64,000 bases of DNA from IMGVR_UViG_3300030019_000003:1-64000; one strand, 5' to 3'; shown: positions 8,137 through 49,886, counted from the first letter of the stretch. Notes: a model not told the origin generated them from the sequence alone. Numbers and translations: made by a program.

Positions 8137-8225
8137 TTTCTTCTCCTTATAAATACTATACTTATCATACAAAATAGTATTAATACCTAACGAAGAGGTT
8201 AAATGATTAAAAATAAGGATGAAAT

Positions 8226-28207: not shown

Positions 28208-29611
28208 TTATTTTTTACTTTCTGCCTGCCTGTCAAGAGACTTATTAGCCAGTGCAAGAATTCTTAATACGGCCTTGTTTGTATAAATACAAGATAGTAT
28301 AATATCTACAACTAGTTCATTTTTAATACTAATCATTTTTTGAAGTTCTCTAAGCTTACGAGTAGCCTCAGTATCTGTTTTATCGACCTTATTAGCAGCT
28401 TCAAGTTCCTTAAGCACTTTATCAAAATCTGCATCAAGAGGTTCATATTCTTTAAAAATATGTTTCATGGCTTCGCTTGATTTAGAAATAGCGGCGCTCA
28501 TTTTCACAAGCGTACCTAAATCAAATTTGCGTATAAGTTTTATTGTTTCATCTGAACTTTCCATAGCGCCATCTCGTCTGCTATATGTGATATTAGAACC
28601 ATGGTTTTCTACAAGATCAATAACACGGTGTTTACTATAGGTAACCCTCCACGCAATATTTGTTTCTTCGTTCCTGTCAATGGTTATCACGCCAAAATAC
28701 TGACCTTTACACCAGATTAAATATTGTCCTGACCCACTACTATGGGGGTCTATGTCAGGAAGTTTAGGGTCTATATCGCCTTTAACATCTTTAGCGTTAA
28801 TTTTTTTCTGCCCAAATTTATCAAAATTACCACCAATTCTTATGGAGTTAAACCCTTGGAAATCTTTAGTCTCTATACCAATAGCTCTAAGATTATCTAC
28901 TATGTCAATATATTCCTCATAGATATCAAATACGCATTTTGAATTGACAGGATTAAAAAATTCGATCGCGGATACACTTTTATAAATATTTTTTAAGGTA
29001 TTTGTATTTACAAAAATCCCGCCGTTTTTTAAATTAGCGACATAGTCATCACCGACTTCAGAAACAAAATTTTTACCAGTATTTTTTAAATTAAATTCCT
29101 GAAACTTAGCTTTTATTTCATCTTCAATACTTTGAGCTTTTTTAACATCTATTTGAGTAACTATTAATATTTTAGCCCACCACATTTTAATCTTAATGAT
29201 GATAGCTTTGATAAATTCTTTAATGTTGCGAATTATAGTCAACACGGTGTCCCTAAAATCTTCATTAGAAAAACTATCAAAAGATTCAACACTCATGATA
29301 CTTTTCTTAAGCTGACAGCCACTAATGTTACAAGCAGTGATATAACTGATCTTAAGATCATTCATCATCTCTGTTGTTACTTCAGTTCCAGCTGACTCAA
29401 CGATCTCAACATTCGTTATAAGATCATCTACAGCCTCACCAGAGTCATTAACATGCTGTGTCGCAGCTTCAATATCTCGCTCATCTTCAACAGCACTGTC
29501 TTCTTGTTCATCACCCTCTATAACATCTGTTGTTGTTAATGGTTCTAGAATCTCTTCGTCGGCATCTTCTTTGCTAAGGCGATTTAAGACACTAATAAGT
29601 TTACTTTTCAC
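28208..29611 (-). CDS. Head-internal protein paralog (gp93-like family)
   Basis: Start moved to GTG 29611 behind AAGGAG; acidic propeptide, MSVE|S and FSNE|D sites, then IIRNIKEFIKAIIIKIKMWW helix. Confidence 0.65.
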   Translation of the reverse strand: MKSKLISVLNRLSKEDADEEILEPLTTTDVIEGDEQEDSAVEDERDIEAATQHVNDSGEAVDDLITNVEIVESAGTEVTTEMMNDLKISYITACNISGCQLKKSIMSVESFDSFSNEDFRDTVLTIIRNIKEFIKAIIIKIKMWWAKILIVTQIDVKKAQSIEDEIKAKFQEFNLKNTGKNFVSEVGDDYVANLKNGGIFVNTNTLKNIYKSVSAIEFFNPVNSKCVFDIYEEYIDIVDNLRAIGIETKDFQGFNSIRIGGNFDKFGQKKINAKDVKGDIDPKLPDIDPHSSGSGQYLIWCKGQYFGVITIDRNEETNIAWRVTYSKHRVIDLVENHGSNITYSRRDGAMESSDETIKLIRKFDLGTLVKMSAAISKSSEAMKHIFKEYEPLDADFDKVLKELEAANKVDKTDTEATRKLRELQKMISIKNELVVDIILSCIYTNKAVLRILALANKSLDRQAESKK

Positions 29612-29680
29612 ATGTACTCCTTTTTTATTATTACCTATATTCAAAAAAATGCCTTAGAAGATTCTAAAACATCATAATGA

Positions 29681-30238: not shown

Positions 30239-30604
30239 ATGAAATCTAAATATAATAAACGTAGTGTTTGGCTTGTGCCAAAAGACTTCTTAACAGGTAG
30301 GTATCTGCAGCTTAGAATAGTTACTAATACTTTCATCAGGGCACCTAAAATAAGCATTTATAATAAAGAAGGCGAGTTACCCTTCCTTATAACACGCTTT
30401 GCCAGTTATGGTGGTTTAAAGTGCTATAGATCAGCTACTATCTTTATTAATAAATCTTTATTAGATAAAGATGTTATGCTAAGGTTATATGGTGAGAGAG
30501 TTAATACCAAAAGTTATCTGGATCCTGTATCTATCTTTAACGATGATACTTTTGAAGCAGATAAAGCTTATGGTAGGAAACGTAACCTAGTTGCTAAATA
30601 TTAG
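30239..30604 (+). CDS. Hypothetical basic protein
   Basis: 121-aa ORF with GAGG RBS. Confidence 0.55.
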   Translation: MKSKYNKRSVWLVPKDFLTGRYLQLRIVTNTFIRAPKISIYNKEGELPFLITRFASYGGLKCYRSATIFINKSLLDKDVMLRLYGERVNTKSYLDPVSIFNDDTFEADKAYGRKRNLVAKY

Positions 30605-31196
30605 CGAGTTATTAAAAAATAAACATAAGGAAAATCCTATGATCGAAGTTAAAACAATATTCTTGGGTAAAGAAACAACAAAAGAGTTTGAAGACGCGAA
30701 TGCCGTTCTATCCTACTTGTCAAGAAGTAGTAATGAGAAATATGATTCATTCAGTAACATCTTACAGCCTGTTAGTTTAACTAAAAGTTGTATCGGCGGT
30801 ATGATCAATACCAGTGTTGATTTTACACTCTCTTCTGAGTTAAAACAAGTTGGTGAAACCTATGAGGTTGAGATTAGAATTTCTAAAATTGAAGGTCTGA
30901 TCAGAACACCTTGGGGTAATAAACAGTTTACCTATACTGATATTAAACAAAATGTTAAAAGCCCCGTAGAAGCTTTTGAGCTTATCTGCGACTCTATGTA
31001 TCAGAATGTAACAGATAAATCATTAGAGTTGTTCTACTATAGCCGTGGAACAGGTAATGCTGTTAAAGGTATCATGTCTGGTAAGGTACAAGTAGTTAAA
31101 AGCTATTGGTACAGCGTATTATTTAATGCAGGTACAAGAGTACTTAATAAGGTATCCAGCCTTATTAATCAGTTTAGAGAAGTAGCGGGTATATAG
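30591..31196 (+). CDS. Hypothetical protein (true start may be the ATG after AAGGA at about 30638)
   Basis: 201-aa ORF ending at a palindrome. Confidence 0.55.
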   Translation: MLNISELLKNKHKENPMIEVKTIFLGKETTKEFEDANAVLSYLSRSSNEKYDSFSNILQPVSLTKSCIGGMINTSVDFTLSSELKQVGETYEVEIRISKIEGLIRTPWGNKQFTYTDIKQNVKSPVEAFELICDSMYQNVTDKSLELFYYSRGTGNAVKGIMSGKVQVVKSYWYSVLFNAGTRVLNKVSSLINQFREVAGI

Positions 31197-31228: not shown

Positions 31229-31402
31229 TTATTTTTTATTTTTTAAAGCATCTTCAATAAGCTTTATTAGATCAGGATATTTTTTAACTCTAGAATCTAA
31301 AAGCTCCTCAAGAGACTGCCAATCTTTATTTTTTATAGCCGTCTCGATAATTTCTTTGTATCCGTCATATTTAACATCATCATCAATTAGTTTTCTAATT
31401 AC
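31229..31402 (-). other. Startless 57-codon -1-frame extension of the 401-aa head protein, reachable through an A10 run / A_AAA_AAG
   Basis: GAA AAA AAA AAG TAA; the -1 frame reads VIRKLIDDDVKYDGYKEIIETAIKNKDWQSLEELLDSRVKKYPDLIKLIEDALKNKK then TAA TAA, right before the terminator. Confidence 0.5.
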
Positions 31403-32604
31403 TTTTTTTTTTCGACAACACTAATTTGTGCTTCTATTAACCAAGCGATATTTTTCATGGTATAAAAATAATTAAGCAAACACCCATTTCCAGCTTTACC
31501 TGTTATGACAATAGACTTGTTTATAACTGATAATGTGCTTTTAATATCGTGACTATCAAATTTTTTACTTAAGCTTTCAGTCATTTTTAAAAGGGCTTTT
31601 CCATCGGCAACATCGTTATCAACGCCACCCTTGTACTTATTAAAATTAGACAACATTTTTTCTAATTCTAAAAGTAGATTGCTAACCTGCTGTTTACTGT
31701 ACCTAGGTAATGGTAATGACTCTTGGCCACTATTTGTAGCTGCGGTATGAAATCCTATTTTACCCGTATCCTCTATAATATATAAACCTGTTAGTTTATT
31801 ATCATGAAACTCTATAGGAATAATAACCACGGATGTATTAGAATTGGGAACTATGCCATCATCCACTAGTGATTGTTTCAATTTACCGGTGATAGTATTT
31901 TTAACATTGTTAAGATGATTATTAAAATAATCAAAAGCTCTTTTAACGTAAAAATTCAATAAGTCACTCTCAGGGACATCTTCTTCTTTAATATGGTACT
32001 CTTTGTCAAACGTATCCTGATTTGTTATACCCCAGGCTATTGAATTATTAAGTTCTCCTATATTTCTAGGAGTTGTCGCTATCTTAATAGCATCTAAAAT
32101 TCTTTCATAACTTAATTGGTTATTTTGAACAAGCCCTGAGAGGCAAATCATTGCAAATTTTCTAGTGAAAGCGGGAGATTCAATACCGCCCTTAGTTTCT
32201 TTAAAATCTGGTAATGTACCTAATGTTGATTTTAACTCAGCTACGTGTTTTTCAAGAAGTTTTGTACCAGTCACAATGCTAACAATGAGACGTTTAATAG
32301 CGGCAATGATACTTTGAAATAACTTATACATATTAGCAATGATCGTATTAATAACATCTTTAAACGATTCTTTACTAAGTTCTTCAAATGTTACTTGTTT
32401 ACCATGAGGTACTGTAATATCTGTAAAAGCTAAAATAGTTCTTAAAGCCTCAGTAGTAATGGTACCATCATCATTAACAACATCCATTACGATATCTGCA
32501 TCGCCCATAACATCAGTAGCCTCGCCAATGAACTCGCTTTCATCATTTATGCCACTCTCGGCATCTTGTAATTCTGATTCTTCCTCAAATGATAAACCTA
32601 ACAT
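31399..32604 (-). CDS. Head-internal protein paralog (gp93-like family)
   Basis: LSFE|E and LSKE|SF sites, IIANMYKLFQSIIAAIKRL helix; similar to the two adjacent genes. Confidence 0.65.
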   Translation of the reverse strand: MLGLSFEEESELQDAESGINDESEFIGEATDVMGDADIVMDVVNDDGTITTEALRTILAFTDITVPHGKQVTFEELSKESFKDVINTIIANMYKLFQSIIAAIKRLIVSIVTGTKLLEKHVAELKSTLGTLPDFKETKGGIESPAFTRKFAMICLSGLVQNNQLSYERILDAIKIATTPRNIGELNNSIAWGITNQDTFDKEYHIKEEDVPESDLLNFYVKRAFDYFNNHLNNVKNTITGKLKQSLVDDGIVPNSNTSVVIIPIEFHDNKLTGLYIIEDTGKIGFHTAATNSGQESLPLPRYSKQQVSNLLLELEKMLSNFNKYKGGVDNDVADGKALLKMTESLSKKFDSHDIKSTLSVINKSIVITGKAGNGCLLNYFYTMKNIAWLIEAQISVVEKKK

Positions 32605-37550: not shown

Positions 37551-39965
37551 ATGGAGATAACTGTGGAAAAATTGATTATTAATGTGCATAACACTAACTT
37601 TGAAGTTATCGTCAAAGATAGCATCGTGTATAGAGTTATTGATATGCTAAAGAACCGATATACAACCCATAGTTATCTCTATTCTAAGTCTCCCTTTAAA
37701 GGAGCTAGACCAAAGCTAACTATGGTTCCGGATAAGATGTATTTTTCAGAGAACAAAAAAGATAAATCTTATCGTTTTTCTATATCTGTATTAAAAGACT
37801 TTATTATTCTTCTTGGGCAACAACGTATTAGAAAAGAAGATATTGTTGTTAATAAAGATAAAGACTATGAGATAGCTCCTTTAGATGTTAATATTAAAAA
37901 TGGTTATACGCCTAAAGATTACCAGTATCGGTATATTGATGCACTTCTTGGCGAAAAAGCTAAGAAGATAGCATTGATAGATCTTATCATGGGTTATGGT
38001 AAGGCACAACCTTTAGATTCAGGAATACTGATACCAACGGGTTGGACAACAATGGGTAGCATCGAAGTAGGTGAGCCTATTATTAATCCAGATGGCTCTA
38101 TAGGTAAGGTTACAGGTAAATACCCACAAGGTAAGAAAAAAGTTTATAAACTTACTTTTGAAGATGGTAGAACCTGTAGAACATCAGGCGAGCATCTATG
38201 GAAAGTATATACTTCAGAAGATAACGAAATAGGATGTGTTATTGATACCCACAGGTTAATGGAATTAATGTATCGTCCTGAAGGAAGTAGTAGGATCTTT
38301 ATAGATCTTATTGTTCCACATGAGTATCTTCCAGATATCATTGTTAATGAGTCACTTTATGATGTAGGTACTAAGTTTGCTAAAGGCGAACTTGAAGTAT
38401 TTAAAGATGAATATCATAGGTGCAGTTTAAAACAACGTATCGAAATTCTTCAAGGATTATTTTTTAATAAAAAATGGAATTTTAACTTTAACGAGATTGT
38501 GGTAAGGGTTGAAAATATTAAAGTAGCAGAACTCATTGTTGCCTTAAGCAGGTCTATAGGCGATATTGCAGAGTTCACTCTTAACGCAGCTCTTAACTAC
38601 GACTTTGAAGAATACAGTCCCGTTGTTAGGATCTATACTAGTAAACCGTACTGTTATTTTATTAAAGATGATACAACGGATTATGATTTAAAAATTAACA
38701 CGTACTTAAAAGAAATGTTACAGCTAGAAGATTTTAAAATTGAAAACTTTGAAGAGGACCCTATTCGATTAGAGTTGAAGAAAGTAAAAATAGATAGTTA
38801 TGAAGAAACATGCTGTATCTCTGTAGATCATCAAGATCAACTCTATATAACAGATAACTTTGTTGTAACGCATAATACTTTTATTTCAGTCTTTACGATT
38901 GTTAAATTAAATATGCGAACTTTGATCATTATACTTCCAAAGTATATTGATAAATGGATCAACGACTTAAAAGAATATACAGATGTTGATATTAAAAACG
39001 ATGTATATATTGTAAAAGGTGGCGACAGCCTTATTGATCTTATGAGTAAAGATGAGATACCTTATAAATTTATCATTTGCTCAATGCGTACAGTTTCTAA
39101 CTATATCAAAGAGTTTGAAGACGGGAGCACGTTATATCCTGTTAGACCTGAAAACTTTATACGTAAGTTAAAAGTAGGTGTTATACTTAATGATGAAACC
39201 CATCAAGAGTTTCATGCTTTATTTAAAGCAAGTCTATATTTTGATCCTCCTAAACTCATAGGTATGACGGCAACAATAGAAACAAAAGACACGGTGATGG
39301 ATAGGATGTATAAAACATTATTTCCTCCTGATGTTAGAATTTCTAATCTTGTTGAGTACATAAGGTATGTTGATGTTAAAGCAACTGCATATACTATGGA
39401 TTCAACACGTGGTATCAAATGTAGAAGACCTGCCGGTTATAACCATGTTCTTTTTGAGCAAACACTAATGCGTAATAAATTAGCGCTCCGTGAGTATATC
39501 GGCATGATCGTGTATTATATAGAGTTAGATTTTATTAGGCGTAGAAAAGTAGGAGAACGCGCTATTATATTTGCAGCAACTGTAGATTTCTGTAGTATCT
39601 TAACAAACCATCTTAAATCAAGATATCCTAACTTAGATGTTAGGAGATATGTTGAGGATGACCCTCTTGAAAATATACTTGTCGCTGACTTAACATGTAG
39701 CACTGTCATCTCGGCGGGCACAGCTATAGACGTCAAAAAGCTTATTTATGTGCTACAGACAATATGTATTTCAAGCATGCAATCTAACCTACAAGCATTT
39801 GGTAGATTAAGAGATTTAGAAGGATCTGAGAAAGTATTTAGATATTTCTATTCCAGAAATATACCAGATCAATATCGTTTACATATCGATAGAAGAGCTG
39901 CATTGTATAAGTTATCTAAGACTTATGAACATGAAGAGTATCCTCATATCTTAAGAGTAAAATAG
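37551..39965 (+). CDS. SF2 (DEAD/DEAH-like) helicase, phiKZ gp75-like, containing an intein
   Basis: Walker A MGYGK|T split by the intein, Walker B ILNDETHQ, motif III GMTAT, AGTAIDV, motif VI QAFGRLR; follows the gp74-like gene as in phiKZ. Confidence 0.85.
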   Translation: MEITVEKLIINVHNTNFEVIVKDSIVYRVIDMLKNRYTTHSYLYSKSPFKGARPKLTMVPDKMYFSENKKDKSYRFSISVLKDFIILLGQQRIRKEDIVVNKDKDYEIAPLDVNIKNGYTPKDYQYRYIDALLGEKAKKIALIDLIMGYGKAQPLDSGILIPTGWTTMGSIEVGEPIINPDGSIGKVTGKYPQGKKKVYKLTFEDGRTCRTSGEHLWKVYTSEDNEIGCVIDTHRLMELMYRPEGSSRIFIDLIVPHEYLPDIIVNESLYDVGTKFAKGELEVFKDEYHRCSLKQRIEILQGLFFNKKWNFNFNEIVVRVENIKVAELIVALSRSIGDIAEFTLNAALNYDFEEYSPVVRIYTSKPYCYFIKDDTTDYDLKINTYLKEMLQLEDFKIENFEEDPIRLELKKVKIDSYEETCCISVDHQDQLYITDNFVVTHNTFISVFTIVKLNMRTLIIILPKYIDKWINDLKEYTDVDIKNDVYIVKGGDSLIDLMSKDEIPYKFIICSMRTVSNYIKEFEDGSTLYPVRPENFIRKLKVGVILNDETHQEFHALFKASLYFDPPKLIGMTATIETKDTVMDRMYKTLFPPDVRISNLVEYIRYVDVKATAYTMDSTRGIKCRRPAGYNHVLFEQTLMRNKLALREYIGMIVYYIELDFIRRRKVGERAIIFAATVDFCSILTNHLKSRYPNLDVRRYVEDDPLENILVADLTCSTVISAGTAIDVKKLIYVLQTICISSMQSNLQAFGRLRDLEGSEKVFRYFYSRNIPDQYRLHIDRRAALYKLSKTYEHEEYPHILRVK
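38004..38876 (+). mobile_element. Class 3 intein (291 aa) with a degenerate LAGLIDADG endonuclease region
   Basis: Starts AQPLDS, block B SGEHLW (Trp), block F ETCCISV (Cys), block G FVVTHN (Thr), +1 Thr. Confidence 0.9.
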
Positions 39966-39988: not shown

Positions 39989-40537
39989 ATGATACATTAT
40001 AAAGGTACTAACTTAAAGGAGTATCCTGTGTACTGTAAAGTAAAACGTGTTGTTCTTATTGTAAAAGTAGGTACTGGCATATGTGAGTCAGTTGTGGAAT
40101 TAGATATTCCTGGTAATCATAAAGTTAATCTCGGCTTAATTACCACTAATGGAACAGAGATGCCTGAGAAGATCATCGAGATGTTAACAAGCAGATCTTT
40201 AACAGGTAATGAATTTACTCTTGTTTCTAATTATGGTAATCTAATTCAGGCATTTGTAGATTTAGATCACGATAATCTTATCACTGCAACATCTTCATCA
40301 GGTGTAGTATTGACAACAGATGAAAGTTCTTTTTTAGCTGTACGTAATGATGCTGATTTTGATGGCAAGAGATTACGTTATAACTCAGGATCTTTAGCAG
40401 TTCCTGAGGCAGACGAATTAGAAATTACTATTACTACAAAACCTATTGCGAGTATTATGACAGGTACTTCAACTTTTTCGATCTATAAACTGCGTGATGG
40501 TATGCAAGTTCTTTATACATTTCCAAAATCTGAATAA
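39989..40537 (+). CDS. Hypothetical protein
   Basis: 182-aa ORF ending at a palindrome; beta-rich composition. Confidence 0.55.
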   Translation: MIHYKGTNLKEYPVYCKVKRVVLIVKVGTGICESVVELDIPGNHKVNLGLITTNGTEMPEKIIEMLTSRSLTGNEFTLVSNYGNLIQAFVDLDHDNLITATSSSGVVLTTDESSFLAVRNDADFDGKRLRYNSGSLAVPEADELEITITTKPIASIMTGTSTFSIYKLRDGMQVLYTFPKSE

Positions 40538-40566
40538 GTAACAAGACTCGTACGAGTCTTGTTACT
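40537..40566 (+). terminator. Perfect 30-bp palindrome followed by a T-rich tract
   Basis: AGTAACAAGACTCGTACGAGTCTTGTTACT. Confidence 0.7.
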
Positions 40567-40637
40567 ATCATTCTTTTTTTCTTTTATTTTTGATCAATTT
40601 TTCTAACAGACTTAATTGATATTTAGGCGTTAAAAAT

Positions 40638-41165
40638 ATGGGCAAGTGTGCCGATAGGCGTCTTATAGAGAGAAGGGGTAACATGGAGAATTACGAATCG
40701 GTGATAGAGTCACTTGGTAGAGTTGTGGACAAGCTTGAAAACATGCGAGAAGACTTATACGATATTAACGATTTTCTAGGTGTTGACGAGACCCTTTATA
40801 AGATTGTTAAACTTGAAGATCTTGATAATGAAACAAGAGAAATCATAGTATTACTTTACAGTAAGTTTAAAGCGGATGCGCAGTTATTAAAGAATGATAG
40901 TTATAAATCAACTTCTAAAACAGTTGATAGTCTGTTAGAGTTAACAAAAGCATGTAAGTATATTGCTGAGGCTATTAGCGCAGCAAATGATGCTAAGTCT
41001 AAAAGAGCTGGGTTCTTTGGTAAAATAGGTTTAGTAGGTGGTGTTATTCTTGTAATACTTGTAACATCATTTACTTTATTCAGTCGAGATCACATAGCCG
41101 GGCAGCTAGTGGTAAATTTGTTTTCAGCTATAGGTAGTACTGTTAAATCAATTTTTGGATTATAG
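40638..41165 (+). CDS. Membrane protein with a coiled-coil N-terminus and C-terminal TM helix (holin-like topology, function unknown)
   Basis: IGLVGGVILVILVTSFTLF TM segment plus an amphipathic tail; alternative start ATG 40683 behind AAGGGG. Confidence 0.55.
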   Translation: MGKCADRRLIERRGNMENYESVIESLGRVVDKLENMREDLYDINDFLGVDETLYKIVKLEDLDNETREIIVLLYSKFKADAQLLKNDSYKSTSKTVDSLLELTKACKYIAEAISAANDAKSKRAGFFGKIGLVGGVILVILVTSFTLFSRDHIAGQLVVNLFSAIGSTVKSIFGL

Positions 41166-41174
41166 GATCAACGT

Positions 41175-41864
41175 ATGAAAGATATTATTAAAAGAGTATT
41201 ATATCTCGTGATTACGAACATGATACGTATTATTAAGAAAGTATCAAAGCAACCCATCACTGGGACTAATGCCTGTGATGTTCCTGATACCACACAACGT
41301 AATCATACCCGAGATGAACTATTAGGGATGTTTGATTTTAGTAAAGTCCCAGAAGTTAAGACTGGAGAAGGTACGGGTCCTAATTTACTTATAGTAGATG
41401 ACATACCCGAAACAATGTACCTGATGAAGTCTACAAGTAATGAATTAAGAAGAAGACACACTCATGATTTTTTTACTGACTTTGCGGTAACACCTATCCT
41501 TATGATAGGGTGTGGTTTTACCACCTATAAATATGTTATGACACCGGGAGTTAAAATAGATTATGCGCTATTAGATATCTCTATAGCTACTAGAGCTAGT
41601 GTACAGAAAATAGATATTCTGGAACTAGACGGTATTGATATTGCAGATATCATTCTTAAGAAGAATCCTGAGGCTAAAGTACGTTTCTTTACAGCTCATA
41701 CTTTGGGTAGAGATGACAAGCGTATGGATGGTTATTATAAAAAATGTAAGGCTCTATTAGGTACAGATCTATTAGATATGACTATCTTTAAAAATAGTGA
41801 TAGATTCGATAGTCTTAACACATTTCTTTATGGTGCTGAAGAGGTTACTGACAATGAGCGGTAA
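41175..41864 (+). CDS. Single-domain response regulator (receiver domain) with an N-terminal extension
   Basis: LLIVDD acidic pocket, YALLDISI phospho-acceptor Asp, LDGIDIA, RFFTAH Thr, IFK Lys; no output domain. Confidence 0.8.
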   Translation: MKDIIKRVLYLVITNMIRIIKKVSKQPITGTNACDVPDTTQRNHTRDELLGMFDFSKVPEVKTGEGTGPNLLIVDDIPETMYLMKSTSNELRRRHTHDFFTDFAVTPILMIGCGFTTYKYVMTPGVKIDYALLDISIATRASVQKIDILELDGIDIADIILKKNPEAKVRFFTAHTLGRDDKRMDGYYKKCKALLGTDLLDMTIFKNSDRFDSLNTFLYGAEEVTDNER

Positions 41865-43284
41865 TCTTAGAATGCTTATTAATGGCACTGATGTTAAGAA
41901 TAGCATCATGTCAAGTATATTGGTAAGCGTAGGGGTAAGTTTAATGTTTATTATATCCATCGTCTATATGTACGATGGAGTTGTAAATGATTACAAGAAT
42001 CGTTTAAAGAGTGTTGCCTATACTGAAGGTATAGACATCAGCTTAATGTGTAACATAGTCTCTTGCAAGTATGCTACGGTTAATATCCATGGTGACACCA
42101 AGACTTATGTTAACAATAATAGTATACTGGAACCTGCTAAGATTGCAGTATCGGATAAACCTCATTTTTATTTTAAACATATTACAGATGATGGTTTAAC
42201 AAATGTTATTTATACCGATGGTGTTACTAAAATTATTTATACGTTTTATATCGATGACTATATCTATTATGATATGGCTTATGCTATTATTCGTAATATT
42301 TTTTTAGTATTAACTATCATGTTGTTTATAGGTTTTATTAACATTGCAAGTAAGCGTAATAAACTTGCAGCGCAAGATGTTAAGACCTTTAAAGATACTA
42401 CAAGAGCGGAGTTTAGACACAACCTGATGGAGTCTCTAAATCATGAATTAAGATTACCTGTCGAAATAGTTAAAGCGTTGCTACGCGAAATGTTTATTAT
42501 GCTATACCCATGTCAATATACTGAAACAGGAATATGTGAATATCAAGATGATACTCCTGTTACTGAAAGTTGCTCTGGATGTAAATACGCACATTCTAAA
42601 AGGGCTGTTGATAAAATAGCTATCGATTACTATCATAAGATGTTATCTCAGACGGATAGAATAGATGCTATTATGAACATATTAGCCGATGGTAAAGAGA
42701 TTAAGTATTCTAATGGAACAGTAAGTATACATGCTATATTACAAAATGTTATGAGCACGTTAAACACATTTACATATCCAAAGTTAGGATGTACCTTTAT
42801 TAATGATGATTTGTTTTTAAATTATGCTACAGGCGGTACTCTTCATAATGGAGATACACAAGGGTTATTTAATATTATGATTAACAATAGTATTGAAGCT
42901 AAAGCCAGTAACATGACATTTAAAGCAGAGAAAGTAGAAAATGGATTTTTAACAATGTATATTACTGATGATGGTCGTGGTATACGAGATCTTTTGGATA
43001 AAATATCCAAAGATGATAAGGTATTCATGTACGGATACTCTAACAAAGATATTTATGGTAATGGATTACGTGCTGTAGGATTCTTAGAAAGAATCATCGT
43101 TAGATGGAATCTTGTGGAAGAGGGTAACTCACCAAGGGGTGTAGGTCTTTCGCATAATAAAGGGTTGCTCAGTGCCACTGGTGGCGGTATTTTTATACAC
43201 GATACGAGTCCTTCAGGTACAACGTTTAAAATTGTTTTACCGGTTAAGGAGAAAAGAAATGGAGAAAAAACTACTAAACTGTAG
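41854..43284 (+). CDS. Membrane-bound sensor histidine kinase
   Basis: Two TM helices flanking a periplasmic domain; H-box LNHELRLP, N-box NIMINNSIEA, G1 ITDDGRGI, F-box FMYGYSNK, G2 RGVGLS, SGTTFKIVLP; start moved to ATG 41854 (GAGG RBS). Confidence 0.88.
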   Translation: MSGNLRMLINGTDVKNSIMSSILVSVGVSLMFIISIVYMYDGVVNDYKNRLKSVAYTEGIDISLMCNIVSCKYATVNIHGDTKTYVNNNSILEPAKIAVSDKPHFYFKHITDDGLTNVIYTDGVTKIIYTFYIDDYIYYDMAYAIIRNIFLVLTIMLFIGFINIASKRNKLAAQDVKTFKDTTRAEFRHNLMESLNHELRLPVEIVKALLREMFIMLYPCQYTETGICEYQDDTPVTESCSGCKYAHSKRAVDKIAIDYYHKMLSQTDRIDAIMNILADGKEIKYSNGTVSIHAILQNVMSTLNTFTYPKLGCTFINDDLFLNYATGGTLHNGDTQGLFNIMINNSIEAKASNMTFKAEKVENGFLTMYITDDGRGIRDLLDKISKDDKVFMYGYSNKDIYGNGLRAVGFLERIIVRWNLVEEGNSPRGVGLSHNKGLLSATGGGIFIHDTSPSGTTFKIVLPVKEKRNGEKTTKL

Positions 43285-43552
43285 TTTATTTATCATATTG
43301 CTTATGACCATTACATTGAACTCCGGTCAAATGGCTGAGCAAAGTAAATGTCTCATACTGCTTGATAGATACGGCATACGCCCTGATTTAAAATCTAACT
43401 CAGGCTGGGCTAGGGTGTGTAATAATGATAAACTAGATTTATATACCTCTAACGGCTTGAGTACTACTGAAAAAGAGGCTATTTGTAAATGCCTTGTATT
43501 CGGAGTAAAAGACAGATCAATTGAAGTTTTCAAGGACGGCAAAAATGAGTAG
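43259..43552 (+). CDS. Small secreted/periplasmic Cys-containing protein
   Basis: Start moved to ATG 43259 behind AAGGAG; signal-like MEKKLLNCSLFIILLMTITLNS; four Cys in the mature part. Confidence 0.6.
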   Translation: MEKKLLNCSLFIILLMTITLNSGQMAEQSKCLILLDRYGIRPDLKSNSGWARVCNNDKLDLYTSNGLSTTEKEAICKCLVFGVKDRSIEVFKDGKNE

Positions 43553-44789
43553 AGTATTAGTACTACTAATAATACTTATGCAAATGGTATATGCCGATGT
43601 AACTTATAAGAATTCTGGTAGTTTAGATTACAGTCTAACTAACATGAACAATAAGAATGTCAACATGGTTGATGTGATTATTAATAATGATTTTTACATC
43701 GGTGATAATACTAAAATAGTGTTCTCACCAGGGGTTCTTACAGATGACAGAGGTACTTATAATAGTATCGTCAAAAGTAATGTTAACAAAATATCGGAAG
43801 TTTATATTAATGAACTTTATGTAAGCTATCTTTTAACCGATAACTTAAGTATAGCCGTAGGTGTATTCCCCTTTAGAAAGGGTGCGTTTTATGAATACGG
43901 ATTTAATGGATATAGAGCAGGAAATGGTTTATATAGTATAACGGATAATGTGTTACAAGGATTTGTAGTTTCATACACATTAGCAGATACTGTATTTCAA
44001 ATAGGAACTGTTTCCTATCAAAAGTTTTTTAAATCGTCACATGATTATGATGAAAAAGCTAGTCCTATAACCTATGATAGTTATAAAGGTAGCGGGATGG
44101 ATTACTTTGCTATTAAACAGAATCTAGGTAAATGGTATCTAGATCTTGAAGTAGCAAATGTTTATCAGTATATGAATACTGTAGATGTTATTGATAGTAA
44201 TGTATACTCTTTAGGAGTATCGTATGATGAATCGGTAACAACAGGCAGAACCTATTATGCTATAGCATCATGGAGCCAGAGTAAAGGTGACACGGGATCA
44301 CTAGCCTATACCTATGATTATTCATATGGTGTGTATAGTCCTATGTACAAACCAGATCCAGATGGAGGACAACCTGAACCACCTAATGGTTCACAACCTT
44401 TTCATAATGATTCTGCTCAGTATGATAGTTTTAAGACATCAGGTTATTTTGCTCTGATAGGTGTTAAACAAGAGATTGATAACGTTATATTTGGAAAAGA
44501 TCTTGTTTTATCGGCAGAGTATGCCTATCGATCTGGCGGTTATCATAGTTTATTAGCAGGAAGACCTTTATCACCTCATGCTTATGCAGATATAGGTAAT
44601 TTTTATAATTTATCTGCAGGTGTTAGGATCGATAAAAATAATATGATTAAACTACGGTACTATATGTATGATACGAATGGGGCGAGTACAAAATACGGGT
44701 TTACACCTGTTACAACAGACGCCACTAATGTTAATGGTGCGTTAACTCGTTATCAAGCTATCATACTACAATGGTATTATGACTTTTAA
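43545..44789 (+). CDS. Outer-membrane beta-barrel protein (porin-like)
   Basis: Signal peptide MSRVLVLLIILMQMVYA|D, alternating aromatic beta-strands, C-terminal AIILQWYYDF with terminal Phe (BAM signal). Confidence 0.75.
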   Translation: MSRVLVLLIILMQMVYADVTYKNSGSLDYSLTNMNNKNVNMVDVIINNDFYIGDNTKIVFSPGVLTDDRGTYNSIVKSNVNKISEVYINELYVSYLLTDNLSIAVGVFPFRKGAFYEYGFNGYRAGNGLYSITDNVLQGFVVSYTLADTVFQIGTVSYQKFFKSSHDYDEKASPITYDSYKGSGMDYFAIKQNLGKWYLDLEVANVYQYMNTVDVIDSNVYSLGVSYDESVTTGRTYYAIASWSQSKGDTGSLAYTYDYSYGVYSPMYKPDPDGGQPEPPNGSQPFHNDSAQYDSFKTSGYFALIGVKQEIDNVIFGKDLVLSAEYAYRSGGYHSLLAGRPLSPHAYADIGNFYNLSAGVRIDKNNMIKLRYYMYDTNGASTKYGFTPVTTDATNVNGALTRYQAIILQWYYDF

Positions 44790-44820
44790 GAGGATTATAT
44801 TTTTTATATAAGGAAAAAAC

Positions 44821-47073
44821 ATGGGTAATATAATGACACTACTTGATAATGTCACAGGTAAAACAATTAATGTGAATGTAGGTAGCGACAGCATACAGGA
44901 AGACGCCAATATTATATTTGGTGGCAATGGCGGTACTGTATTAACCTATGAAGAAATGAATGACCCTAGCAATATACCTGATGGCTTTAAAGCAGGTTTA
45001 AAAACATATTTTGATACTTTGTACTCTGCAGGTAGTGGTGGTTCTGGTACTATTACAGGCTCTTCAACAGCTCCTATTTTAACAGGTCCTAATGTTGGTA
45101 ATGAGACGGCAACAATTACTATAAGTGTTGATAACTACGATCCTTCAAGTATTTATACTTTTGATGTATCTGGTGGTAGTTTTTCAAGAGTAGCAGGTGT
45201 TGTTACGTGGATACTTCCACAAGTAACAGATTCAGCCGCACACAAGCTTACTGTAACTGTAACCAATCCTGGTAAAACAGTAACATCAGTATATCACTCT
45301 GTAAATGTTTTTAATATTAACGCGACTGTCGACTCTATGGTTGTTTACCAGGATACGACTATGGCACAGTTTAGTAATTTATATAATGCTAGTATTGTTA
45401 ATAGTAAGCTATTAGCAACAGACGATACTGTGTTATCAGTAGGAAATAATAAGGTTATCGCCGTAGCTGTTATGGAGAAAGGTGACAATATTTATGTTGA
45501 TGGTAATGTGTATAATGTGGACACGTTAACAACAATGTCACCTATCACTAATGGTGCTTATTTATTATCTACAACTAACAGTGTTCCGTTTTTGACTGCT
45601 GCGAATAGTAGTCCTACTATTGGAACTGCTATAGGTAGTGGCAATTGGTCTACATACTACCAACCCTATACAGTATTTGGAACACCACAATATGGTGTAT
45701 GGGCAGATACTAAGTTAACAAATGCGTGGGTAGGATTTACATTTCTAACTGCTAAAGTTATTAACAAGTACCTTATTAAAGGTTTTAAATTGGTAGGTGG
45801 CAGTGGTGTTACAGCTACATGTGCTCCTAAAAGTTGGATGTTACAGGGTAGTAATGATGGTACAAATTGGGCTACACTAGATACTGTTTTAAACCAGCCA
45901 ACATGGAATGATGATGAGGTTAGAATATTCGTATGCGAAAATGGTGTAGCGTACACAAGTTACAGAATTTTCATTACTGCTAATCAAGGTAACACAACTG
46001 TAAGCGGTCTTAGTAATCTTTCATTCGTAGAGGCAGTAGGCTCAGTAACGTTAGTAACCGGAACAACACCAACTCTACCACAGTTTATTACATCTGCTAA
46101 ATTATTAACAAAATATGGTGAGAGTGCCGTTATAACACAAGATACCTATGAAACAGATTTTACAGGGTTAACAGCTATAGAAGCTATTTATGAACAATAC
46201 AATATTGTGTCAGATTCAACTACAGTAACTTCCGCACCTACGGGAAATGTTATCTTAGGGGATACTGTTATTTTTGGAAATACTACAGATGGTGAAAGAT
46301 CATTAACTGTTAATAGCTCTAACTATAGTAATAATATCTTGGATATTTCATCTTTAGGTTTTACAGTTGTACCGACGTATGGGTATAGAAAAGATTCAGT
46401 TTTAAAAATAAATATAGGTGATAATGTATTATTATCAGATACTAGAACAGATGTTATTTTATCAACTCCTATGTTTGTTTCGGATGGTAGCAAGAATACA
46501 TCTGTTGTAAACGCTGTCCCAGTTTTATCAAGTGCAAGTGCTGCTGTATTATTAGGAGCCGTTTATGGTGGGTATACAGGTTGGTATGCCTTTGACTCAG
46601 GTCTTGTTGATACGGTACAGACATGTTTATTAAATGTTACCGCTACAGTACCATCGTGGTTAGGTTACGACTTTACTAGAAAGATCATTATTAATAAGTA
46701 TGGTATTAATTCTAGAGTGAACTGGAGTGGTCCAGGAACATGGAAGTTACAAGCATCTAATGATAATGTTACGTTTATAGACTTAGACACGCAGACAGGT
46801 ATCACTTGGACAACAACTGCTACTACAAAATGGTTTACATTTAACAATGCCGTTGCTTACAGATATTATAGAATATATGTAACAGCCCCTGTTAACTATA
46901 TCGATATTACAGAGTTAATATTTGTAGAGAACAATTCTACTAAGATGCGGATTAAAACTGATTATAGCGATATCATCACTGGTAATTCAGCTAGAACGTT
47001 AAAGTTCAAAGTTAAGTTAAATAAGATTGGTGATGCACTAGCAAAATTAACAGCAACTATACAAAAACTATAA
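44821..47073 (+). CDS. Tail fibre/receptor-binding protein with two discoidin (F5/8 type C) domains
   Basis: APKSWMLQGSNDGTNWATLD…YTSYRIFIT and PGTWKLQASNDNVTFIDLD…YRYYRIYVT; followed by a tail-assembly-type gene. Confidence 0.75.
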   Translation: MGNIMTLLDNVTGKTINVNVGSDSIQEDANIIFGGNGGTVLTYEEMNDPSNIPDGFKAGLKTYFDTLYSAGSGGSGTITGSSTAPILTGPNVGNETATITISVDNYDPSSIYTFDVSGGSFSRVAGVVTWILPQVTDSAAHKLTVTVTNPGKTVTSVYHSVNVFNINATVDSMVVYQDTTMAQFSNLYNASIVNSKLLATDDTVLSVGNNKVIAVAVMEKGDNIYVDGNVYNVDTLTTMSPITNGAYLLSTTNSVPFLTAANSSPTIGTAIGSGNWSTYYQPYTVFGTPQYGVWADTKLTNAWVGFTFLTAKVINKYLIKGFKLVGGSGVTATCAPKSWMLQGSNDGTNWATLDTVLNQPTWNDDEVRIFVCENGVAYTSYRIFITANQGNTTVSGLSNLSFVEAVGSVTLVTGTTPTLPQFITSAKLLTKYGESAVITQDTYETDFTGLTAIEAIYEQYNIVSDSTTVTSAPTGNVILGDTVIFGNTTDGERSLTVNSSNYSNNILDISSLGFTVVPTYGYRKDSVLKINIGDNVLLSDTRTDVILSTPMFVSDGSKNTSVVNAVPVLSSASAAVLLGAVYGGYTGWYAFDSGLVDTVQTCLLNVTATVPSWLGYDFTRKIIINKYGINSRVNWSGPGTWKLQASNDNVTFIDLDTQTGITWTTTATTKWFTFNNAVAYRYYRIYVTAPVNYIDITELIFVENNSTKMRIKTDYSDIITGNSARTLKFKVKLNKIGDALAKLTATIQKL

Positions 47074-47079
47074 GGAAGT

Positions 47080-47412
47080 ATGATGCAAATTATAGAAACA
47101 TTAAAACAAACAGGTGCCTTTATTAGAAAAGTTTATCAGGAGATTCCTGATACCTATAGTAGTACTAAAGGTAAACGTATGCTAGACGTTAGCCGTATTA
47201 AGGTCACTATTACTATTGATGGTCAAGAGATAGCATTTGATGGTGATGAGCGATCTCAAGATAGGCTTAATCGGGCTTATACAGTAGCTAAAGGTAAGAA
47301 TAAACTTGCTAAATGGAAAACCTACGACAATGCTGATGTTATGCTAACAGCTGATCAAATACTTGATATACTTGATGCAGCCGGAATGGAACAAACTAGT
47401 TTATGGTTTTAA
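47080..47412 (+). CDS. DUF4376-like phage tail-associated small protein
   Basis: IDGQEIAFDGDERSQDRL…WKTYDNADVMLTADQI…LW pattern. Confidence 0.65.
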   Translation: MMQIIETLKQTGAFIRKVYQEIPDTYSSTKGKRMLDVSRIKVTITIDGQEIAFDGDERSQDRLNRAYTVAKGKNKLAKWKTYDNADVMLTADQILDILDAAGMEQTSLWF

Positions 47413-47513
47413 CATACTGCCCAGTATAGTTAGTATATAAAAATTATTATCATACTTATGGTCTAAAAGCCATAAGTATGAATTTTAAATAAAAAAGAGA
47501 GAGAGGAATAATA

Positions 47514-49886
47514 ATGAATAATGTTATGACACTAACAGACCCTATTACCAATAACAATATAAACATTAGTGTAGAGGGTGATAGTATCGTGAAGAGTGTA
47601 GATATTGTTTTTGGAAAAGATGGTGGTAAGGTTATAACTTTTGAAGAGTTATCCGATCCAGCAAAATTGCCAGCTGAATTCTTAGCAGCGGTCAGTGGTA
47701 CTGATGCCGATGGTGTGATTTCTATATTTACAAACGCTACAAGTGATAATGTAATAGCTGATACAGATAAGATACCATTTGTAAATGTTGGTGATGGTAC
47801 TAATGAGAGTATTAACAATATACCATTTGGAAGTTTTAAAACAGAATTAAAAACATATTTTGATACGCAGTATGCCGGTAAAAATGCTGATGGTACCACA
47901 GTAGGTTCATCTGCTGCCCCAGTGATATCAGGACCAGATATTGGTAATGAAACAGCTACTATTGTGCTAACCGTTGACAATTACAATACGAGTAGCATTT
48001 ATACTTTTGATGTAAGTGGTGGTAGTTTCTCTAGATCAGGTGGCGTAGTAACCTGGTTATTACCACAAGTAACAGATTCAACAGCGCATAAGTTAACGGT
48101 GACAGTTACTGATGCTGGTAAGACTCCTACGACTGTTTTTCATTCTGTTAACGTTTTTAATATTAACACTACAGTAGACTCTATGGTACTTTATGAAGGA
48201 AGCACATTAAGCGAGTTTAGCAATTTATACAACATGAGTGTTGTAGCTAGTCGACTACTAGCTACAGGTGATACTATTTTAACTGTTGCTAATAATAAAA
48301 TAGCTACAATTCCAACAATGGAAAGTGGCGATAAGATTTTAGTAGACGGCATAACATATGAAATATCATCTTTTGCCCTTGGTGAAGATGGCGCTAGTAA
48401 TACCTCTTTATTAAGCGCAGTGCCGGTATTAACAAGTAACACTAGTAGCACACTAGGTACAGCTATTTGTAGCAATGCTTACTCTGGTCATGCGGCATTT
48501 AATAGTTTTAATATGGGTAATATAGCTAATAGCTGGATAACGAATAGTTTTGCGGGAACCGACTATTTGGGATTTAATTTTATAGCACCCATAGTTATTA
48601 ACAAGTACACTATGATTGGAAATGGGTATGATAAGGTTTCATCTCCTAAAAGTTGGATATTACAAGCATCTAATGATGGCACAACCTGGGTAAATTTAGA
48701 TACTAGACTTAATCAACCAGTGTGGGTTAATTCAGAGTCAAGAACATACACATTTCTAAACTCAGTACCTTATAAAATTTATAGGGTATACATTACAGCT
48801 AATCAAGGTGGCGTATACGCTCAAATAGGTTACCTATCGTTAATACAGCAAGGTACCGTGATTTCAGCGACATTACCAGTATTACCACAATTTATTACAG
48901 CTGCAAAGTTATTAACTAAATTCGCAGAAACTAATACTATTACACAAGATACATATGAAACAGATTTTACAGGTGTATCAGGGTTGACTGCTGTGTATGA
49001 GCAATACAATTTAATAACAGCTGGTGCAACAGTAACCTCTATTCCAACAGTATCTGCCAATGTGGGCGATATAATTATACTTGGAAATAGCGCAGATGGT
49101 GTTAAAACACTAGAACTTACAACTAGTAATTATACTAATGGCGTTATTGATATTTCATCTTTAGGATTCGCAACTGTACCAACATACGGTTATCGCAAAG
49201 ATGCAAAATTACAAGTTGGGATAGGTAGTAATTCATTTGTAGCAGATAATAGAGTAGATACGATATTATCTTCACCTCTTTTTATAGGTGATGGTGCACA
49301 AAACACATCAACAATTAACGCAATACCATTATTAACAACGGATACCCCAGCTTTAACCAATAGTGCCCTGTACAATGCTACCTACCCAGCATGGCATATT
49401 GCAGATGGTGTACTAGTAGACACTGCGTCAACATGTTTAATACAAGTAGCTGCTGGTGCCCCAGCGTGGTTAAAATATGATTTTAGTAGGCCTATCGTTA
49501 TTAATAAATATGGTATTAATTCTAGAGTAAACTGGTCTGCGCCTACAGCATGGACACTACAAGCATCTGATGATAATATCAATTTTGTTATATTAGACAC
49601 TAGAGTAAATATTGTTTATACCGCAACCGCTGAGACTAAATGGTTTACGTTTAATAACGCAAAAGGTTATAGGTATTATAAACTTGTTATTACGGCGCCT
49701 ATAGCTTCTTATGTGGATATTACAGAATTAATTCTTGTAGAGAATAACTCTTCTAAGATGCAAATTAAGACTGTCTATGACGATATCATTACAGGTAACT
49801 CTGCTAGAACACTTAAGTTTCGTGTTAAACTTAATCAAATCGGAGATGCTGTAGAGAAGATTTCTGGAACAATAGAAAAGTTATAA
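47514..49886 (+). CDS. Tail fibre/receptor-binding protein with two discoidin domains, paralog of 44821-47073
   Basis: SPKSWILQASNDGTTWVNLD and APTAWTLQASDDNINFVILD; long shared segments with the 750-aa gene. Confidence 0.75.
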   Translation: MNNVMTLTDPITNNNINISVEGDSIVKSVDIVFGKDGGKVITFEELSDPAKLPAEFLAAVSGTDADGVISIFTNATSDNVIADTDKIPFVNVGDGTNESINNIPFGSFKTELKTYFDTQYAGKNADGTTVGSSAAPVISGPDIGNETATIVLTVDNYNTSSIYTFDVSGGSFSRSGGVVTWLLPQVTDSTAHKLTVTVTDAGKTPTTVFHSVNVFNINTTVDSMVLYEGSTLSEFSNLYNMSVVASRLLATGDTILTVANNKIATIPTMESGDKILVDGITYEISSFALGEDGASNTSLLSAVPVLTSNTSSTLGTAICSNAYSGHAAFNSFNMGNIANSWITNSFAGTDYLGFNFIAPIVINKYTMIGNGYDKVSSPKSWILQASNDGTTWVNLDTRLNQPVWVNSESRTYTFLNSVPYKIYRVYITANQGGVYAQIGYLSLIQQGTVISATLPVLPQFITAAKLLTKFAETNTITQDTYETDFTGVSGLTAVYEQYNLITAGATVTSIPTVSANVGDIIILGNSADGVKTLELTTSNYTNGVIDISSLGFATVPTYGYRKDAKLQVGIGSNSFVADNRVDTILSSPLFIGDGAQNTSTINAIPLLTTDTPALTNSALYNATYPAWHIADGVLVDTASTCLIQVAAGAPAWLKYDFSRPIVINKYGINSRVNWSAPTAWTLQASDDNINFVILDTRVNIVYTATAETKWFTFNNAKGYRYYKLVITAPIASYVDITELILVENNSSKMQIKTVYDDIITGNSARTLKFRVKLNQIGDAVEKISGTIEKL

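Follow-up and report, generated by a model that had tools for sequence, protein, structure and literature searches.

A predicted envelope two-component signalling cassette carried by phiKZ-like jumbo phages

The window analysed here, a 64,000-nucleotide stretch (positions 1-64000) of the uncultured viral contig IMGVR_UViG_3300030019_000003, carries five same-strand, translationally coupled open reading frames at 40683-44789 (+). These are g1 (40683-41165, 160 aa), encoding a predicted bitopic inner-membrane protein; g2 (41175-41864, 229 aa), a divergent stand-alone receiver; g3 (41854-43284, 476 aa), a two-TM HisKA/HATPase_c sensor kinase; g4 (43259-43552, 97 aa), a small secreted protein with four cysteines; and g5 (43545-44789, 414 aa), a porin-like barrel. 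Spacing between consecutive genes is +9, -11, -26 and -8 nt. The g1 start at 40683 is preceded by an AAGGGG ribosome-binding site, while the start at 40638 given in a preliminary description of the locus is an upstream in-frame ATG. With that start refined, the observation made there, namely five overlapping or closely spaced genes that include a receiver and a kinase with intact catalytic motifs, is confirmed. The arrangement is far beyond chance, as all five genes have dN/dS values of 0.19-0.52 between two relatives and their order is conserved.

Just before g1, an intrinsic-terminator-like hairpin (40537-40585, +), comprising a 13-bp perfect stem (40537-40566) and a T-run, closes the upstream unit. 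An equivalent 12-15 bp hairpin of different sequence, usually followed by a T-run, lies about 60-110 nt upstream of g1 in 9 of 12 loci inspected. Between the terminator and g1 is an AT-rich motif (40588-40602, +; TTGATCAATTT here, roughly TATGATTAATTT in relatives), recognized by eye in the upstream sequences. It is not enriched elsewhere in the window and can only be considered a candidate cassette promoter or operator of unproven function. Downstream of g5, and not separated from it by a terminator, are two paralogous tail-protein-like genes (44821-47073 and 47514-49886, together spanning 44821-49886, +), each with two discoidin (F5/8 type C) domains.

The g1 product is predicted to comprise a helical cytoplasmic domain of about 114 aa, one TM segment (115-133) and a periplasmic tail of about 27 aa, and it matches no known family. 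A protein of the same size, position and topology precedes the receiver in every locus that includes that region. Significant HMM hits were obtained in 15 related loci, whereas in two others, L016 and L017, g1 is not detectable by HMM and only its architecture matches.

The receiver of g2 spans about residues 66-222 and is preceded by an N-terminal extension of about 65 aa, consisting of an amphipathic helix (2-24) and a linker, and carries a β-hairpin insert after the acceptor Asp. In an alignment of 7 homologues of 25-34% identity, Asp75, Asp76 (41397-41402), Asp134 (41574-41576), Ala174 and Lys206 (41790-41792) are invariant, with Thr or Ser at position 173 (Thr173 in the window, 41691-41693). 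Sequence-model matches are marginal: the window protein has no Pfam hit, 2 of 7 homologues hit PF00072 at E 0.02 at best, and a family profile searched against PDB sequences returned CheY/Spo0F-type receivers as the best 14 of its 16 hits, at E values of only 0.016-0.47. An AF2 model (pLDDT 81.7) contains the five strand-helix units of a (β/α)5 receiver fold and places the acidic pair, acceptor Asp, Thr and Lys at the C-terminal ends of β1, β3, β4 and β5 (strands 70-75, 130-134, 168-173 and 203-205). All 50 top Foldseek PDB hits to this model are receiver domains (TM by target up to 0.70), and ESM Atlas structural neighbours are Response_reg.

The g3 product has the anatomy of a class I sensor histidine kinase. 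Hydropathy peaks at 18-36 and 144-162 predict two TM helices bracketing a periplasmic domain of about 107 aa that contains a Cx4C motif (Cys66/Cys71), and the cytoplasmic portion carries the H-box His197 (42442-42444), Asn345, the G1 box (Asp372-Gly376), Phe391 and the G2 box (Gly429-Gly431). A Cys4 insert (Cys220/Cys228/Cys240/Cys243) lies in the DHp hairpin and is present in about a third of the family. A family profile gave hits to CheA, YycG, ZraS and HK853, aligning positions 175-212 to the His helix of HK853 entries. HATPase_c matches 53 of 54 diverse members (best 2.5e-14) and HisKA matches 7 of 54 (best 7.9e-7), while the window protein itself is only at the HATPase_c threshold (26.3-26.4 bits against a cut-off of 26.4) and its Atlas model has a pTM of just 0.38. 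The H+4 residue of the H-box varies (Leu in the window), so phosphatase activity may be weak.

The g4 product has a signal peptide, four invariant cysteines (31, 54, 76 and 78) and no match to a known family; no lipobox is present in any of 6 homologues. The g5 product has a signal peptide and a C-terminal ...WYYDF, with an aromatic residue at its end. Its AF2 model (pLDDT 78.7) is all-β, with about 16-18 strands, and gives Foldseek hits to AlgE, OmpM1, Omp32, MOMP and OmpC at E 1e-12 to 1e-8 (TM about 0.5-0.65), in agreement with porin neighbours in the Atlas, although the AF2 alignments used here were shallow (7 and 12 sequences). As no Pfam or NCBIfam hit to a named porin family (Porin_1/4, Porin_O_P, Alginate_exp, DUF3373) was found, we regard g5 as porin-like by fold rather than as a member of any named family. 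The g5 family comprises about 14 clusters, all on metagenome contigs, and the six examined for context are phage-like.

To determine if the cassette belongs to the phage, as opposed to being the phage-host chimera that the preliminary description had named as a possibility to be excluded, we examined composition, independent assemblies and synteny. The 252 kb IMG/VR contig encodes phiKZ RNAP β, DNA polymerase, PhiKZ_VTX and phiKZ_IP genes, and phiKZ hallmark genes flank the cassette. GC content is 0.33-0.34 across the region, the same as the rest of the window, and two independent metagenome contigs match 41083-45035 at 100% identity, including the 44.8 kb junction with the tail gene. The same cassette lies behind the phage helicase/RNAP genes in many assemblies from other samples. 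The g1-g2-g3 order recurs in all 17 related loci, besides the window, that include the upstream sequence, and g4-g5 follow in 12 of them, with all five genes present even in a distant 183 kb contig. In the remaining 5 loci (L009, L014, L017, L024 and L025) g4-g5 are missing beside the kinase, yet these kinases still keep the periplasmic Cx4C, indicating that the barrel is an accessory and not a requirement for sensing.

The kinase family contains 146 clusters (50% identity) at E<=1e-30, nearly all full length. Across 141 representatives, His197, Asn345, Asp372, Gly376 and Gly429 are invariant (141/141), Gly374 and Gly431 are found in 140, Glu198 in 137, Pro202 in 136 and Phe391 in 125, and the periplasmic Cx4C is present in 137. 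All sampled members come from unannotated metagenome contigs, and no member was found in 50,697 GenBank phage records. No bacterial-genome relative was found in 185,579 species genomes apart from a generic 26% HATPase match, and no close cellular homologues of either the kinase or the receiver were found.

Taken together, these data suggest that g1-g5 encode a phage-owned two-component system that monitors the host periplasm or envelope during infection, a reading to which we assign a probability of about 0.6. What sequence and models establish is limited to the anatomy: an inner-membrane HisKA/HATPase_c kinase with a nearly universal periplasmic Cx4C, a receiver with every phospho-chemistry residue and no output domain, a bitopic membrane protein that always precedes them, and a periplasmic four-Cys protein and porin-like barrel that are translationally coupled to the kinase in most relatives. 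The mechanism, including autophosphorylation, phosphotransfer, ligand and output, is inferred without experiment. In this view, the kinase would autophosphorylate on His197 in response to a periplasmic signal, most plausibly thiol/disulfide or envelope-integrity status, that is read by the Cx4C domain and, where present, modulated by g4 and g5 as an outer-membrane-to-periplasm input arm. The phosphoryl group would then pass to Asp134 of g2, and phosphorylated g2 would act at the membrane by protein contact rather than DNA binding, with its amphipathic N-terminal helix and the cytoplasmic domain of g1 being the likeliest interface. An output by protein contact suits a phiKZ-like phage that uses its own RNA polymerases. 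The decision controlled is probably a late-infection one, such as lysis timing or a response to superinfection or envelope damage, although this step is the least supported.

The interpretation offered in the preliminary description is therefore only partly supported. Its assignment to a jumbo phage, its recognition of a complete kinase and single-domain receiver pair, the rarity of such a pair, with no match in 50,697 GenBank phage records, the predicted placement of products in the inner membrane, periplasm and outer membrane, and the position directly before genes it called receptor-binding, here the two tail-protein-like discoidin genes, all hold. Its proposals that a cue enters through the barrel, and that the output is lysis timing, superinfection exclusion or host signalling, remain conjecture. 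It also missed that this is a large, old, phage-restricted family rather than one phage's acquisition, that the kinase carries a Cys4 insert in its DHp hairpin, and that g1 is part of the conserved core.

Other readings must be weighed against this model. The most credible, though still tentative, is that g1-g2-g3 is a signalling unit while g4-g5 is a separate outer-membrane remodelling or superinfection-exclusion pair that merely shares a transcript, by analogy with phage-encoded OMPs such as lambda Lom. The five loci lacking g4-g5 are consistent with this, as are the porin-like proteins of other phages and the frequent occurrence of β-barrel OMPs in huge phages, for which receptor masking has been proposed (bioRxiv 10.64898/2026.10.24.761521). 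However, when present, g4-g5 always sit immediately after the kinase, and g4 and g5 nearly always overlap each other, even in the distant locus L015; the g5 family was found only in this phage group, and both the kinase sensor domain and g4 have conserved periplasmic cysteines. It is less likely, but possible, that the pair mainly hijacks host signalling, with g3 phosphorylating or dephosphorylating host regulators, or g2 acting as a phosphate sink, to silence or trigger host envelope-stress or defence responses rather than to inform a phage decision. Stand-alone receivers often act as phosphate sinks, g2 has no output domain, the H+4 phosphatase position is variable, and phage proteins that interfere with host two-component systems are known, such as PIT4 of a Pseudomonas phage. 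Against this, the kinase and receiver are always adjacent, often overlapping, and have co-diverged over a very wide family, which is the signature of a cognate, insulated pair, and the absence of close cellular homologues among the sequences searched leaves no obvious mimicry.

That the proteins are inactive relics, keeping their folds as a pseudo-receiver or pseudo-kinase used structurally, might be suggested by their extreme divergence but is very unlikely, given that every catalytic residue is invariant or nearly so across representatives sharing <=50% identity and that purifying selection acts on all five genes. A mis-joined contig or a freshly captured bacterial operon with no phage-specific role might be suspected because two-component systems and porins are typical bacterial genes and the contig is a metagenome assembly, but this is effectively refuted by the composition, independent contigs, synteny and family distribution described above. 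At the speculative end, and in our view improbable though not excluded, the cassette could be a viral trans-envelope sentinel in which the phage plants its own barrel and a disulfide-bonded periplasmic partner in the infected cell's envelope to report surface events to the phage kinase, be it adsorption or DNA injection by a second phage, outer-membrane damage or a phage-made extracellular signal. The receiver, acting with g1 at the membrane, would then set the time of lysis or block superinfection, which would constitute a kinase-based decision circuit in a strictly lytic, phiKZ-like jumbo phage, functionally comparable to T4 lysis inhibition or to arbitrium but built from different parts.

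We found no prior description of this cassette, although its components resemble known systems. Like orthodox bacterial two-component systems with a periplasm-sensing HisKA kinase (EnvZ/PhoQ/CpxA type) and single-domain receivers (CheY, Spo0F type), it has a two-TM kinase with a periplasmic loop, an H-box of the SHELRTP type together with N, G1, F and G2 boxes, a receiver with its catalytic residues at the canonical strand ends, and adjacent, overlapping genes. It differs in being encoded by lytic phiKZ-like jumbo phages only, in lacking a HAMP domain or any named sensor domain, in the Cys4 insert found in part of the family, in the receiver's N-terminal extension and β-hairpin insert, and in always having the dedicated bitopic partner g1, while sequence identity to any cellular kinase is too low for a named subfamily. 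The envelope-spanning layout of an outer-membrane barrel, a small cysteine-containing periplasm-facing protein, an inner-membrane accessory protein and an inner-membrane kinase recalls the Rcs phosphorelay (RcsF/OMP complex, IgaA, RcsC/D/B) and the NlpE-OmpA-CpxA pathway (PMC9907809, PMC7553776, bioRxiv 10.1101/2022.10.18.512811). This is a working analogy only, as family searches detected no homology, g4 has no lipobox, the bulk of g1 is cytoplasmic whereas that of IgaA is periplasmic, and there is no HPt step and no DNA-binding regulator.

Among phage-encoded systems, g5 is one more huge-phage barrel of about 16-18 strands with a signal peptide, and a survey of such proteins reports 1,603 OMPs in 1,303 huge phages (bioRxiv 10.64898/2026.10.24.761521). 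That text never mentions histidine kinases, two-component systems or porins, whereas here the barrel is translationally coupled to a kinase operon. The divergent receiver cREC (PMC7824862) is likewise a receiver-fold protein of jumbo phages with conserved catalytic Asp residues, but it is stated never to occur with histidine kinases and to be linked to NAD+/ADP-ribose enzymes, while g2 is always next to a kinase. A membrane sensor histidine kinase gene is also carried by the Clostridium difficile myovirus phiCDHM1, whose agr cassette (agrB, agrC, agrD) comprises quorum-sensing genes of bacterial type in a phage of a Gram-positive host (PMC3901668). That phage is temperate, and its cassette is not known to include a response regulator. 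The cassette described here has its own receiver and envelope partners, and belongs to a large phage-restricted family.

The proposed envelope-signalling cassette lies on the + strand of the 252,159 bp contig IMGVR_UViG_3300030019_000003, the first 64 kb of which form the window, where five ORFs occupy the region between 40.6 and 44.8 kb and nothing credible is found on the other strand. Using ribosome-binding sites, database gene calls and homologue alignments, we place g1 at 40683-41165, g2 at 41175-41864, g3 at 41854-43284, g4 at 43259-43552 and g5 at 43545-44789, and the five-gene arrangement reported in the preliminary description holds. The spacing between consecutive genes is +9, -11, -26 and -8 nt, so the last four are translationally coupled. 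A perfect 13-bp hairpin with a T-run (40537-40585) ends the preceding unit, while no terminator separates g5 from the next gene at 44821. A perfect hairpin of 12-15 bp and of differing sequence precedes g1 in 9 of 12 loci, usually followed by a T-run, and is conserved in structure but not in sequence (the window at 40537-40602, and the related loci L002, L004, L005, L007, L008, L009, L011 and L014). The hairpin is followed by an AT-rich motif resembling TATGATTAATTT, which may be a cassette-specific promoter or operator; it is not enriched elsewhere in the window, and we rejected the possibility that it is a general promoter.

To determine whether the cassette resides in phage DNA, we examined its composition, its flanking genes and independent assemblies of the same region. 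GC content stays at 0.33-0.34 through the region, as in the rest of the window. The window encodes a phiKZ-type RNA polymerase beta subunit (phrog_3015, 1e-136), a DNA polymerase, three paralogous phiKZ_IP internal head protein genes (4626-5975, 28208-29644 and 31399-32604, - strand) and a PhiKZ_VTX gp28 homologue at 18065-19777. These markers place the contig among phiKZ-like jumbo phages, although there is <=31% identity to any cultured phage over the RNAP beta subunit. A helicase gene (37551-39965, +) encodes a protein about 30% identical to those of phiKZ-like phages; its product is 804 aa, against 502-562 aa in the related loci L002, L004, L008 and L009, shows a weak Intein_splicing hit, and matches intein-bearing phage terminase, primase and helicase-loader PHROGs over residues about 115-240. 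Homologues of 805 and 855 aa in L005 and L011, the latter with a faint LAGLIDADG hit, suggest an intein or homing-endonuclease insertion that comes and goes in the clade.

Downstream of the cassette lie two paralogous genes of 750-790 aa (44821-47073 and 47514-49886, +) resembling tail or receptor-binding proteins, each with two F5/8 type C (discoidin) domains and each sharing N-terminal and C-terminal sequence with the other, with a 110-aa ORF between them. Relatives have Laminin_G_3, collagen or RCC1 proteins at the same place, so this is a variable adhesin slot. A 983-aa protein with RCC1-type repeats (57783-60734, +; PHROG 'regulator of chromosome condensation', 8e-34) is encoded further along the window, and an RCC1/WD40 protein also follows the cassette in L011. 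Two contigs from other JGI metagenomes match window 41083-44366 and 42036-45035 at 100% identity, the second crossing the junction between g5 and the tail gene, whereas the upstream junction is supported by synteny, as in relatives the cassette also follows the RNAP-beta and helicase genes. We therefore reject the hypothesis that the cassette is a chimera, a concern raised in the preliminary description.

The g2 protein of the window has no Pfam, PHROG or NCBIfam hit. Taken alone, the preliminary assignment of a receiver was unproven, but the evidence that follows settles it. Seven homologues of 25-34% identity keep D75, D76, D134, A174 and K206 invariant, with T or S at position 173. A profile of these sequences searched against PDB sequences returns CheY/Spo0F-type receivers as the best 14 of 16 hits, aligned in the correct alpha3-beta4 register, albeit with E-values of only 0.016-0.47. 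An AF2 model (pLDDT 81.7), built from a shallow alignment, shows the five beta-alpha units and places the conserved residues exactly at the C-terminal ends of beta1, beta3, beta4 and beta5. All 50 best Foldseek hits in the PDB are receiver domains, and the ESM Atlas structural neighbours are Response_reg. In contrast to canonical receivers, g2 has an N-terminal amphipathic helix (2-24) and a disordered linker, a beta-hairpin of about 11 extra residues between the acceptor Asp and the DG motif, no Pro after the Lys, and no output domain.

Hydropathy analysis of g3 predicts TM segments at 18-36 and 144-162 around a loop of about 107 residues. About 35 residues after TM2, leaving no room for a HAMP domain, comes an H-box that reads NHELRLP in the window, followed by the N box (NNSIEAKA), G1 (DDGRGIRD), F (FMYGYS) and G2 (RGVGLS). 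The family profile hits the catalytic domains of CheA, YycG, ZraS and FixL, as well as the His helix of HK853. An exhaustive HMMER search of 1.84 billion representatives found 146 clusters at E<=1e-30 and 312 at E<=1e-10, nearly all of them 430-520 aa and aligned end to end. In 141 full-length representatives, H197, N345, D372, G376 and G429 are 141/141, and a periplasmic Cx4C (C66/C71) is present in 137/141. Of 54 diverse members, 53 hit HATPase_c and 7 hit HisKA. Between the two DHp helices, the window protein has a Cys4 insert (C-x7-C-x11-C-x2-C; C220, C228, C240 and C243; window 42511-42582) that gives a weak hit to the Pfam zf-like cysteine-rich domain (E 2.7e-4, below cut-off), and four or more cysteines occur there in 48 of the 141 members. 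The insert may be a metal or redox site in an unusual position. We considered whether it is linked to the presence of g4-g5, but rejected this, as the related locus L017 has the cysteines and no g4-g5.

The remaining three genes belong to no named sequence family. The g1 protein is predicted to have a helical cytoplasmic domain of about 114 residues, one TM segment flanked by upstream Lys/Arg residues (N-in), and a short periplasmic tail. A role for g1 as an HPt-like phosphotransfer protein was rejected because its only conserved His is Tyr in the window's copy. The g4 protein has a signal peptide, no lipobox and four invariant cysteines. Searches of g1 and g4 against Pfam, NCBIfam, PADLOC and PHROGs, and profile searches against the PDB, gave nothing significant, and a TIM9 hit at E 0.17 and a designed coiled-coil hit were dismissed. 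A possible g4 paralogue at 30591-31193 was likewise rejected (hhalign probability 33%, cysteines not conserved). The g5 protein has a signal peptide, ends in ...WYYDF and models as an all-beta barrel (pLDDT 78.7, again from a shallow alignment). Its best structural matches are AlgE, OmpM1, Omp32, MOMP and the enterobacterial porins (E 1e-12 to 1e-8), and the Atlas calls its neighbours porins. The best structural neighbour of g5 in the Atlas is DUF3373, mostly Campylobacterota, which is too weak to name a host.

To determine whether this organization is conserved, we fetched related loci (designated L002 onwards) through the kinase and barrel families and scored all of their ORFs with HMMs of the five families. 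The order g1-like, g2, g3 is found in every locus that includes the upstream sequence (17 related loci besides the window), although g1 in L016 and L017 is matched by architecture only. The g4-g5 pair follows directly in 12 distinct related loci: L002/3, L004, L005/6, L007, L008, L010, L011, L015, L020, L021, L022/23 and L026. In L008, the barrel gene (8067-9057) is split over four overlapping frames while the other four cassette genes are intact, reflecting either sequencing or assembly error in a Logan contig or a decaying g5. L015 is a 183 kb contig whose kinase scores only 1e-57. In contrast, g4-g5 are absent beside the kinase in L009, L014, L017, L024 and L025. We read g1-g2-g3 as the core and g4-g5 as a frequent accessory that is either ancient or mobile within the clade. 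Between L004 and L005, dN/dS is 0.21, 0.24, 0.19, 0.52 and 0.25 for g1 to g5. The loci have 24-35% GC, except L015 at 44%, and L017 carries Peptidase_S80 and an RNAP fragment, so distant members are also phiKZ-like.

The family was not found outside metagenomic sources in the collections searched. DNA and protein searches of 50,697 GenBank phage records with the cassette, with the g2 and g3 proteins and with three distant kinases found no member and no cultured relative, the only match being a generic HATPase in a Salmonella record. Scans of IMG/VR with the single kinase and with an 11-member alignment both returned only the source contig. A scan of 185,579 species genomes (GTDB) returned no true relative, only a 26% HATPase match in an Arthrobacter genome of 63% GC, which we rejected as irrelevant. 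Ten family proteins looked up by exact sequence occur only in Logan, ENA and JGI assemblies, and the cassette has no annotation in any source queried.

What the analysis establishes directly is the set of parts and their predicted compartments, the intact catalytic motifs, the coupling of the genes and their conservation; signalling itself, its mechanism and its purpose are inferred. In the reading we favor, g3 would sense a periplasmic condition through its Cx4C domain, autophosphorylate on His197 and pass the phosphoryl group to Asp134 of g2. Phosphorylated g2 would then work by contact at the membrane, with g1 as the obvious candidate partner because it is the only other universally linked gene and exposes a large predicted cytoplasmic domain. 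Where present, g4 and g5 would form an outer-membrane-to-periplasm input arm, and the conserved cysteines on both periplasmic components point to thiol/disulfide or folding status as the signal. The biological decision, whether lysis timing or a response to superinfection or envelope damage, is the weakest link, as it rests only on logic and on the cassette's position before the tail genes. The interpretation in the preliminary description, that the phage may sense a periplasmic or external cue that enters through its own barrel and use it to control lysis timing, superinfection exclusion or host signalling, is supported only in part.

Other readings compete with this one. The pair may instead engage in cross-talk with host regulators, or g2 may serve as a phosphate sink, and g4-g5 may constitute a separate receptor-masking module. 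The proteins may also be inactive relics, while the evidence is strongly against an assembly artefact.

If the cassette signals, giant phages take environmental or envelope decisions during infection with machinery they evolved themselves, and a receiver without a DNA-binding domain would offer a route to study how a phage that transcribes with its own polymerases couples outside information to its cycle. In that case, the family also provides very divergent, compact kinase and receiver scaffolds, a DHp-hairpin Cys4 insert and a new predicted periplasmic Cx4C sensor domain for structural study.

A literature search on phage-encoded histidine kinases returned no hit in the paper collection searched, and the huge-phage survey of 2020 does not mention two-component systems. 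The 2021 jumbo-phage review describes only a receiver-like cREC domain that never accompanies kinases, and a 2026 preprint on envelope proteins of huge phages reports 1,603 barrels but no kinase. The nearest precedent we could cite for a phage-borne kinase is the agr cassette of phiCDHM1 (PMC3901668). That cassette reportedly lacks a regulator. The layout of the present cassette recalls RcsF/OMP/IgaA/RcsC and NlpE-OmpA-CpxA (PMC9907809, PMC7553776, 10.1101/2022.10.18.512811), although this is analogy only, since homology tests failed. Lytic phages are usually thought to read the host's condition indirectly, and known phage sensing uses small receptors such as arbitrium AimR, VqmA-like proteins or T4 RI. 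Here, a complete kinase-receiver pair without close cellular relatives has its own predicted membrane, periplasmic and outer-membrane partners, and is a conserved feature, under purifying selection, of a broad and wholly uncultured clade of phiKZ-like jumbo phages.
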